Part shown: one piece after another, positions 4,598 through 38,486 of the stretch
Numbering within the stretch: the stretch's first letter is position 1
How the letters are laid out: every line of letters starts with the position of its first letter
Source of the DNA: Piromyces finnis finn
Lineage: Eukaryota > Fungi > Neocallimastigomycota
Assembly: GCA_002104945.1 (NCBI GenBank)
Contig: MCFH01000021.1
Location: 682,001 to 746,000, forward strand
Direction of reading: 5' to 3'
DNA length: 64,000 bases
Translations under genes and position numbers: made by a program
The notes under the pieces: generated by a model
The model's input: the letters and a program-made list of their open reading frames with translations, nothing else
What the model was told of the DNA's origin: nothing
Databases searched by the model: none

Positions 4598-5846
4598 AAT
4601 TTTTCATGTGAAATTATAAATCTCAAAAAAAAATAAAGAAAATAAAATGATATATATATAAGCATATAAGCATTATTATTTGTTAACAATAATATTAGTG
4701 AATATATTTATATTAAATATTTAAATAATTGTAAAACCAAGTTTTCAAATTCATTATCCAATTTAGTGTAGAATTTATGAAAACTCAATATTACATTAAT
4801 AATCATAGTTAAAATTTGTAAATATAATAAACACTTTAAAAAGTATATAAAATTATATATATTATCAATATTATATAAAGTAATGAAATTTAAGTATATA
4901 AAATATAAAAGTAATAATACTATTGTCTGCTTTCATTTTATATTTTAGTACTCTGCAATAAATTATGTATATAGAATATATAGAATATATATTTTTGTTT
5001 TATTGTTAATTCTTTTTATTCATTTCTGACATTAAGATATTATTGTATAAATGTATTTAAATAAAAAACTCATTTTTAAGCACATTCTAATTTTTAACTA
5101 TTTTCAGTTTCTTAAAAAATAAATATTTTTTTTATTAAAACTAATGTTTAAAATAATGATTATAGGTAGAAGAGTAAAATAAGTTTATTTTGGGTTAAAT
5201 TTATTAATTAAAGATACTTAATATTTAAAAAAAAAAAAAAAAAAAAAAAAACAGCTTTTTTCTTTAAAAAAAAAAAAAAGGAAAAGAAAAGAATTAAATA
5301 TTTATAATTATGATATGGTAATATTAAGAATAAAAATAGTATAAATTTGAATTTATATGTAACAGTAACTAAAATATTAATTATGGTTAATTATATTTAA
5401 AAAGGAAAATGATTAAAAATAAAATTAATAGAAAAATTTTAATGAATAAATTTAAAACAAAATAAAAAGTTTAATTTAATGATTTTTTAAATTTTAATCG
5501 TCAGTATTTTTATAATTAAAATGTTTTTAATTATAGTAACTAAATTTTATAATGACAAAATTATTACTATATTATTATTAGTAATACTTGACATCATTAA
5601 AATAATATATATACAATATATATATGGATTGTATGGTTATTAAAATATAAGTATTTGATATGGTTTTCTTTATAAAATTTTAACTATTTCAAAAATTTTA
5701 TTGATTATTTAATAATTAACCCTAATAATGAATTATTAAATTATACAATAATTAATATAATATTAATGGATTAAGCTTTATAAATTTTCTCATATCCTTA
5801 TGTAATACAAAAAAATATAAATTGAAGATTAATACTTTTTTTCTTT

Positions 5847-35397: not shown

Positions 35398-37851
35398 ATG
35401 GTATGTTTTTTATAAATATTAATAAGTTCATGTAATTAATAAATATTTATGGGTATTCCATTCCCCAAGGTAAATATTATATTAATTTTTATATAATAAA
35501 ATAAATAAAAACAATAATAGCATGGTGTAAAAAAAGCTTATATTTCCGAAGAAATTCGTCAAGAGAAGAAATTAAAAGAAAAATCAGAAATTAATGATTA
35601 TTTAAATTTAGTAAAAATCATTAATGAAAAGGTAATTAATATAATTATAAATTCGAAAAAATAAATTAATTTTTATTTTTTAAATTCTAATAAAATGTCT
35701 TTTTATTAAGAGAAAAAATAAAGTATATGATTCTGAGGCATTTAATATAACTACAAAGATTTTATCAATGAATGTTGAATACTATACTTTGTGGAATTTT
35801 AGAAGAAAAATACTATTACATGAATTCGAAACTTTGTAATATAGATTTTATTAATAATATTTAATTGATATAAATAATATAATTATAATAAACAATTAAA
35901 TATCTTATTATATTTAATTTTTTATTTTATTATTAGAATAATAATTTACTTTTAATATTAATTTTTTTTTATATATATCAATTGATTCTTTTTTCATAAT
36001 TAAAAAAAAATAAATAAATAACTATTTAATACAAAGAACTTCTGAAGAAAAGGAAAAAAAATTTGAAACAGAATTGGAATTTCAAGAAAAATGTGTTAGA
36101 AAGAAGCCAAAATCATATTGGGCATGGAATCATAGACGTTGGATTTTAGAAAATATGGAAAAGCCAAATTGGAAAAGAGAATTATTGTTAGTCAATGGGA
36201 TGTTAAATTTAGATACCAGAAATTGTAAATATAATAATAAAAGAATAAATGTAATTTAAAATAATAATAATATAATGTAATAAATATTAAATTATATACC
36301 ATTTTTATTATCTTAATATTATTAAATAAATAATTACAAAAAAAAAAAAAAGTTCATGGATGGGATTACAGAAGATATGTAATTTCAAAATCTGAAGTAT
36401 CAACAACAAAGGAAGAATTTGAATATACCAAAAAGAAAATTAGTCAAAGTTTCTCAAATTATTCTGCATGGCATTATAGAAGTAAACTTATTCCAAAACT
36501 AATTACTAAGAAAACAAAATGGGAAAAATTATTAGGAAATGGTATAGTATTATCTTTATTGAATTTTGAAATTAGCAATAAAATTTAATTTTAATGCTAT
36601 ATATATAATGATACAGAACTTGAAATGGTAAAAAACGCTGAATATACTGATCCTGCTGATCAAAGTGCATGGTTATACCATTGTTGGCTTCTCGGAGATG
36701 GTAAATAATACTTATTAATAATTTATTTTTAAAATATTCTAATTATTAGTTTTTTTTTTTTTTTAATTTATAATGGATTAGATAATAGTCTTGTAGGAAT
36801 TAAAAATTGTTATATAATTGACAATATTGATAATACATATACACTTGGCATTGAATTTTTTAAAAAAATAAAGGTAAAAAATATGAAATAAAAAAATATT
36901 ATAATATAACAGGAAATTAATAATATAATATTTAAATTTGATTATTGTATAAACAAATCAAAATATAATGAAATAATATTTAGTTAGTTTCATCTAATTC
37001 AATTAAAATTTCCTTAAATAACGAAAATCAAAACTCTGAATTTTTTACTCCATCTATAAGAAAAAATAAATTTAGTAAACTATGGATATCCTTTTTTTAA
37101 ATGATAATTAATATATTTAAATATAAATTAAAATTTTATTAATAGAATATAAAACTTAACTCAATTGATCATACATTTCAAAGTTAACTTTTAAAGATTT
37201 TTCTAAAAATCAAGATTCTATAATAAAAATTAGCTTTAATAAAAACGAAGTGATTACTATAGATGATAAAAAATTAATTATTCCAGATCTTGAATTTGCT
37301 CTTAATTCATTATATATTAAAGATGAAAATATGAATTATAATATAAAAGAACAATTAAATAATTTTAATTCTTTATGCAAAGAAGAAAAAAAAGAAGATC
37401 AAATAAAGATTGTAAATATCCAACCATCTGAAGATATATTAAATGAAGAATTAGAGTCTGTAAGAGAATTACTTGAATTAGAACCAGATAGTAAATGTAA
37501 GTAATATGTATCATCATATTTCTCATTATTATAATTTGTAATAGCAAATTAATTTATAAATTTATATTGAATAATTATTAATAGGGGCATTATTAACATT
37601 AGTTAAAATTTTATCTAAACTTGGAAATAATGAAGATGAAATCATTGAAATTCTTGAAAAATTAAAAGATATAGATATTTTCAGAAAAGAATATTATATG
37701 GATTTTGGTAAGATATTATTTATATTTAAGAGTTAAATTAGTAACAAATAATGTTTTAACTATTTAAAATATAAAATTATCAATTTAACAAAATAGTAAA
37801 CCAATTTAAAATGAATAAATGTATTATGAAGGTATAGTAATATTAATAATC

Positions 37852-37940
<89 letters not shown>

Positions 37941-38486
37941 TAATAATAATAATAAAATTTAGGCTGATAAAGACATATCACTTGATTTATCATCCCAAGA
38001 TCTAACTAAATTGCCATTAATTGACGAATGTTCAACATTTAAAAAAATAGATTTATCTAATAATCCATCAATATTTAAATCAATTGATAATGAAAACTCT
38101 CAAACTTATGATACATTATCATATTTAATAAGCGTAAATACATTAATTATTAATAAAAATTCTTTAAAATCAATTCCAAGATCATTACTTTCATTATTAA
38201 ATATTACTGAACTTTATTTAGAGAATAATGGTAAATAAAATATATTATAATCATCAATTTTTAATTAAAAAATATTAAAAGTTTTAATTTTTATTAATGA
38301 AAATGTTTATTTTTTTTATCCATATTTATTGAATACGGTAAAGAATTTTCAAATCTTGAAGATCTTAAACTTTTAAAACAAATTAAATCTTTAAAAACTG
38401 TTCATCTTGGTAAAAATCCTTTATTATCTTCTCATGAAGAATCAGAAATAAAAGAATATTTTAATGGCATTGATATTTATTTTTAA
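35398..38486 (+). CDS. RABGGTA: Rab geranylgeranyltransferase alpha subunit (PPTA repeats + ~200-aa insert + C-terminal LRR); ~13 exons
   Basis: M|HGVKK..., [31 protein letters not shown]|[53 protein letters not shown]|W, then LRRs ([32 protein letters not shown]). Confidence 0.93.
37086..37174 (+). other. U12-type AT-AC intron in RABGGTA, 89 nt
   Basis: CTA TGG|ATATCCTTTT ... AAACTTAAC-(14 nt)-AC|ATT TCA AAG restores the frame into ORF 37250..37504. Read-through gives ISFF*, and the alternative GTAAAC/AATAG pair also gives a stop. Confidence 0.9.
37855..37953 (+). repeat. (AAT)n microsatellite inside RABGGTA intron 37832-37962
   Basis: Direct reading. Confidence 0.93.

Follow-up and report, generated by a model that had tools for sequence, protein, structure and literature searches.

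A predicted U12-type AT-AC intron in the RabGGTase alpha gene of Piromyces finnis at the aligned boundary of the human RABGGTA minor intron

Exons 9 and 10 of human RABGGTA are separated by an intron of the U12 type, with G/GT-AG boundaries (slashes mark splice junctions) and a G at position -2 (PMC10853781). A supplementary mutagenesis primer from the same study, read as its reverse complement, gives His-Val, the mutated Trp codon and then GTATCC. The fungi for which minor introns together with minor snRNAs have been reported include Piromyces finnis and Neocallimastix californiae (Larue and Roy 2023, PMC10639083), and positional conservation has been used to verify minor introns (PMC10639083). 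In the literature searched, we found no paper linking plant RGTA genes and U12 introns. Here we analyse the RabGGTase alpha gene of P. finnis in a window of 64,000 nucleotides, the whole stretch of DNA under study, which has a G+C content of about 18%. We conclude, with a probability of roughly 0.9, that the gene contains a predicted U12-dependent AT-AC intron at the boundary that aligns with the human U12-type GT-AG intron, and that this intron most likely goes back to the ancestor shared by fungi and animals, or further, one of the two lineages having changed the subtype.

The gene model and the features discussed below are listed in the table. Database searches were run exon by exon or with database proteins, and the model was joined for the stop count and the identity test. 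The initial annotation had assigned the gene to RabGGTase alpha, and the searches agree with this assignment. PPTA repeats were recognised in exons 3-5 (E-values from 4e-12 to 5e-7), with a weaker, sub-threshold repeat in exon 6 (E 2.7e-4). The best solved relatives were rat GGTase-II alpha chains, with an E-value of 6e-14 versus 1e-10 for FTase alpha; exon 5 matched residues 144-192 of rat GGTase-II alpha (E 4e-13) better than it matched farnesyltransferase alpha. When the fungal profile was compared with that of animal RabGGTA using hhalign, the two aligned over 546 columns with 100% probability. The Pfam LRR_9 domain was weak in the public P. finnis protein ORX50397.1 (E 7e-4) and clear in the relative P0001. 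For the insert domain, single-sequence searches with exon 9 gave no match in PDB or Pfam, and the RabGGT_insert profile also missed the fungal insert, which was aligned to the animal insert solely by the profile alignment with hhalign.

Table. Features of the P. finnis RabGGTase alpha locus and candidate minor snRNAs; positions are those of the window unless a contig is given.
Feature	Position	Strand	Remarks
RabGGTase alpha (GGTase-II alpha) gene	35398-38486	+	13 exons, 594 codons, no internal stop
Exons 1-5	35398-35400, 35521-35631, 35711-35835, 36037-36224, 36353-36541	+	
Exons 6-9	36617-36700, 36782-36873, 36984-37085, 37175-37496	+	
Exon 8	36984-37085	+	ends ...KFSKLW (TGG, phase 0)
AT-AC intron (predicted U12-type)	37086-37174	+	89 bases, 11% G+C; required to reproduce the public protein
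5' splice site ATATCCTTT	37086-37094	+	9/9 vs U12-type consensus /RTATCCTTT
Branch-site motif CTTAAC	37155-37160	+	direct reading; extension CTTAACTCA, 37155-37163
3' terminal AC (...CATAC/)	37173-37174	+	
Exon 9	37175-37496	+	starts ISKLTFKD...; rest of insert region and start of last PPTA-like repeat
Exons 10-13	37585-37707, 37797-37831, 37963-38230, 38344-38486	+	
Rival conventional intron GTAAAC...TTTTAAAG	37075-37196	+	122 bases, in frame
U12 candidate			66.6 bits vs Rfam cut-off 53; above
U6atac candidate	L004:1501-1649 = G000:C112:211500-211648	+	52.1 bits vs cut-off 33; above
U11 candidate	L002:1501-1615 = G000:C152:317514-317628	+	38.2 bits vs cut-off 39; just under
U4atac candidate			49.2 bits vs Rfam cut-off 53; just under

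Apart from the AT-AC intron, the 11 introns of the gene are all GT-AG and range from 75 to 201 bases. The first coding exon consists of the start codon alone and is followed by a 120-base GT-AG intron (to 35520) and then by CAT GGT GTA (His-Gly-Val); the N-terminus of the public protein, MHGV, agrees with this arrangement. Intron 11 (37832-37962) is nearly entirely an (AAT)n simple repeat with 4% G+C, and reading through it would give a long poly-Asn run.

The translation of the 13-exon AT-AC model is identical to ORX50397.1 (UniProt A0A1Y1V9D1), a protein prenylyltransferase of 594 residues from Piromyces finnis, and the intron is therefore already present in the public annotation. In this sense the AT-AC intron of RabGGTase alpha is already known, being part of the public gene model of a species with published minor introns. 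The same inference may underlie both the public model and our AT-AC reading. Relatives were collected by searching a representative protein library with exon 9, which returned P0001, and by a word search with P0001, which returned ORX50397.1 (P0011) and P0010. P0001 is an orthologue of 591 residues with the junction KFSKLW/IAKL. P0010, of 594 residues and with the junction KFSKLW/ISKL, is encoded on a contig of 1785 bases, which is the exact length of the coding sequence. The contigs of P0001 and the members of its cluster (JGI, Logan) are 1977-2088 bases long and thus too short to accommodate about 1300 bases of introns, which suggests that they represent transcripts of related fungi. Residues N292-I299 were invariant in all four close Neocallimastigomycota-like sequences. 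Metagenome scans by protein alignment and with a degenerate junction pattern yielded chance matches alone, and none of these encoded a RabGGTA relative.

On the forward strand, positions 37086-37174 with their flanking codons read ...AAA CTA TGG/ATATCCTTTTTTT...AAAACTTAACTCAATTGATCATAC/ATT TCA AAG..., and splicing would create the exon junction CTATGG + ATTTCAAAG. With the interval removed, the reading in frame 3 (...KFSKLW) continues in phase 0 into frame 2 (ISKLTFKD...). An AT-AC intron that restores the frame at these positions had been proposed in the initial annotation, together with a stop at ISFF* if the intron were kept. Both proposals hold: the signals are present, the spliced model has no stop and equals the public protein, and unspliced read-through of the intron gives WISFF*. 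The branch-site motif is a partial one, matching six of the eight positions of the consensus TCCTTRAY (AACTTAAC vs TCCTTAAC). The candidate branch adenosine is at 37158 or 37159, which places it 15-16 bases before the end of the intron. The spacing between CTTAAC and the terminal AC is 12 bases, so that the short distance described earlier for this motif stands, but the figure of 14 nt given for it does not, unless the AC is counted. The pyrimidine tract is absent from this intron, and its 3' region is A-rich.

By analogy with textbook minor splicing, the U11 snRNP would recognise ATATCCTTT, and U12 would pair with CTTAAC(TCA), leaving a branch adenosine bulged some 15 bases before the end of the intron. 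The U4atac/U6atac.U5 tri-snRNP would then catalyse removal of the intron, after which Ile299 would directly follow Trp298, in phase 0. Retention of the intron would introduce the stop four codons on, and the remainder of the insert would be lost together with the final PPTA repeat and the putative LRR domain.

We compared the occurrence of the 5' motif in the window with chance expectation. The core ATATCCTT alone occurs at five sites in the 64-kb window against 7.7 expected, which is not unusual. The composite pattern ATATCCTT-N45-75-CTTAAC-N8-16-AC, on the other hand, occurs once against 0.02 expected, with matches in 2 of 100 shuffles, and this single match falls precisely where the conserved gene needs an intron. 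Three further ATATCCTT sites, at window positions 5792, 39679 and 40447 (forward strand), are not followed by a CTTAAC-type motif in the next 260 bases and are most likely chance matches. Pattern searches were also carried out on the whole P. finnis assembly (56.46 Mb in 232 contigs, with the window on contig C124). Loose composite patterns were not commoner genome-wide than their reversed controls (84 vs 170 and 33 vs 34), whereas the stringent pattern ATATCCTTT...TCCTTAAC...AC had 10 matches vs 2 in the control. This enrichment indicates that canonical AT-AC introns exist in the P. finnis genome. The motif alone is nevertheless insufficient to prove any single AT-AC intron in this genome.

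Enumeration of all frame-keeping GT-AG, GC-AG, AT-AC, AT-AG and GT-AC splice pairs produced a conventional alternative at the same place. The GT-AG pair 37075-37196 keeps the frame and contains no stops, its GTAAAC donor is similar to the other donors of the gene, and ATATCCTT by itself is found at chance frequency; the true intron could accordingly be this U2-type one, with ATATCCTTT and CTTAAC as chance matches in AT-rich DNA. Such an intron, however, would drop SKLW and ISKLTFKD and replace them with a single Asn codon, whereas the relatives retain KFSKLW/I(S/A)KL, with N292-I299 invariant, and the junction Trp is invariant in animals as well. In addition, the public model uses the AT-AC pair, and the composite U12 motif would be expected only 0.02 times per window. 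We rejected 37075-37196 as the main splice because relatives keep the residues that it would delete, and we consider this explanation extremely improbable. An AT-AG pair, 37086-37183, was rejected because in the relatives the Trp is still followed by I(S/A)K. The conservation of the junction residues thus argues against both the GT-AG and the AT-AG alternatives as the main form. The AT-AC intron 37086-37174 remains the preferred reading.

One candidate apiece for U11, U12, U4atac and U6atac was found in the P. finnis genome with Rfam models. The U12 candidate retains GAGUAAGGA as its branch-site box, and a direct reading allows eight pairs, around a bulged A, between CTTAACTCA and UGAGUAAG of this candidate. 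The energy of the U12:branch-site duplex is -7.4 kcal/mol, a value that is not distinct from shuffles (p ~0.13). Among the 12 introns of the gene, the AT-AC intron pairs best with the 5' end of the U11 candidate. Nevertheless, the duplex energies of U12, U11 and U6atac against all 12 introns gave no discrimination in this AT-rich DNA, and we gave them no weight. The 3' tail of the GT-AG intron 12 (38231-38343), for example, reaches -14.2 kcal/mol with the U12 branch-site box and beats the minor intron by chance. Duplex energy is useless as a test for U12 dependence in this AT-rich genome.

In U6atac, an AAGG box base-pairs with the UCCUU stretch at the 5' splice site. The sole U6atac candidate carries GUGUUGUAUGA-GCCG-AGAGA in this region, with GCCG in place of the AAGG of the Rfam consensus. 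With GCCG at the pairing box, the candidate lacks complementarity to the ATATCCTT sites used here. The P. finnis genome contains no second locus with the 5' end of this candidate, and a U6atac-like site at C152:562273 was discarded, as it had no Rfam match. The U11 candidate contains the stretch GUGCGGAAUCGAUAUCAAGAGAUUUCG and the Sm-like site AAUUUUUGA, both of which are close to human U11; its 5' end is AAGAAAAGUUUU, unlike that of human U11, which is of the AAAAAGGGC type. About 550 bases downstream of the U11 candidate, the opposite strand carries a SNORD14-like snoRNA.

Rare U2-type AT-AC introns exist, and the odd 5'-splice-site box of the U6atac candidate would fit removal of the P. finnis AT-AC intron by the major spliceosome. 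Alternatively, the same 5' site could be joined in frame to the downstream AG at 37183, as an AT-AG intron that drops Ile-Ser-Lys. The 5' site, however, matches the U12-type consensus at nine of nine positions and is not of the major A-TAAGT-like type, there is no pyrimidine tract, and candidates for all four minor snRNAs are present. For the AT-AG form, the relatives again retain I(S/A)K after the Trp. Moreover, experiments have shown the homologous intron in human to be of the U12 type (PMC10853781). Taken together, we judge either of these variants very unlikely, and we continue to treat the intron as a predicted U12-dependent one.

The position of the intron was then compared with that of the human one. 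In a MAFFT alignment of 25 sequences, W298 of the fungal protein fell in one column with a Trp present in chytrid, glomeromycote and animal orthologues, and this Trp was invariant in 11 animal sequences. In the hhalign comparison, the W298 region was paired with high confidence with the animal ...s-vWi-dlp block. The rat equivalent of the junction Trp (1DCE) is W300, in SHVW/LCDLP, and the alligator equivalent is W298, which is inside the Pfam RabGGT_insert domain (242-344). The mutagenesis primer, combined with the protein alignment, supports the conclusion that the human U12-type intron follows ...HVW in phase 0, that is, at the same aligned boundary as the fungal intron. The initial annotation had described the junction Trp as apparently homologous to that of human ...SHVW, had placed the junction inside the Ig-like insert, and had suggested a deeply conserved minor intron. 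The MAFFT and hhalign columns, rat W300 and the primer (PMC10853781) support the homology. The location in the insert is in agreement with the alligator Trp within RabGGT_insert, the fungal insert itself being aligned by hhalign alone, and the suggestion of deep conservation accords with the codon boundary and phase shared with the human U12-type intron.

Minor introns are considered to be gained very rarely, and conserved position to be the norm. An intron at the same aligned boundary in both lineages is therefore probably ancient, its subtype differing by lineage (AT-AC in P. finnis and GT-AG in human). The subtypes do differ between the two documented lineages, as might be expected if minor introns had been gained independently at a favoured site. 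The codon boundary and the phase, however, are identical and follow an invariant Trp, and, given the rarity of such gains, we regard convergence as unlikely. Inheritance is preferred: the intron probably dates back at least to the ancestor shared by fungi and animals, and its subtype then changed in one of the two lineages. We offer a broader proposal only tentatively and consider it doubtful as a whole. It holds that the intron is a relic from at least the fungus-animal ancestor, of LECA age if it also occurs in plants or amoebozoans, in which the codon was kept and the subtype switched, and that, separately, the lineage may recognise canonical ATATCCTT with a diverged U6atac box (GCCG for AAGG). 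The diverged box, if true, would imply an altered 5'-splice-site hand-over in the minor spliceosomes of gut fungi.

The analysis supports the public P. finnis RabGGTase alpha model as correctly spliced, and its significance is otherwise small. It adds a probable case of a minor intron that occupies the same codon in human and in a fungus of an early-diverging lineage. Shared positions of this kind can be used to date minor introns and to check minor-intron calls in AT-rich genomes, in which the 5' motif alone turns up by chance. A separate look at the unusual box of U6atac might be worthwhile.

Among known systems, rat RabGGTase alpha (PDB 1DCE/1LTX) has in common with the fungal protein the PPTA repeats and, probably, the insert between repeats 5 and 6 and the C-terminal LRR region; the two differ in that the fungal insert is missed by Pfam RabGGT_insert and is linked to the animal one through profile alignment alone. 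With the other AT-AC introns of P. finnis and the Neocallimastigomycota (PMC10639083), the intron shares the ATATCCTTT start, the short AT-rich body, the terminal AC and the set of minor snRNAs. Its branch motif is degenerate (AACTTAAC) and lies about 15 bases from the 3' end, as in textbook cases. A close counterpart is the U12-type intron that separates exons 9 and 10 in human RABGGTA (U12DB; PMC10853781), which belongs to the same gene family and interrupts it in phase 0 at the aligned boundary after the insert-domain Trp. The human intron is GT-AG and was tested in minigenes, whereas the P. finnis intron is AT-AC and is known here from sequence. Both introns follow an exon with a terminal GG and have the TATCC core at their 5' splice site.
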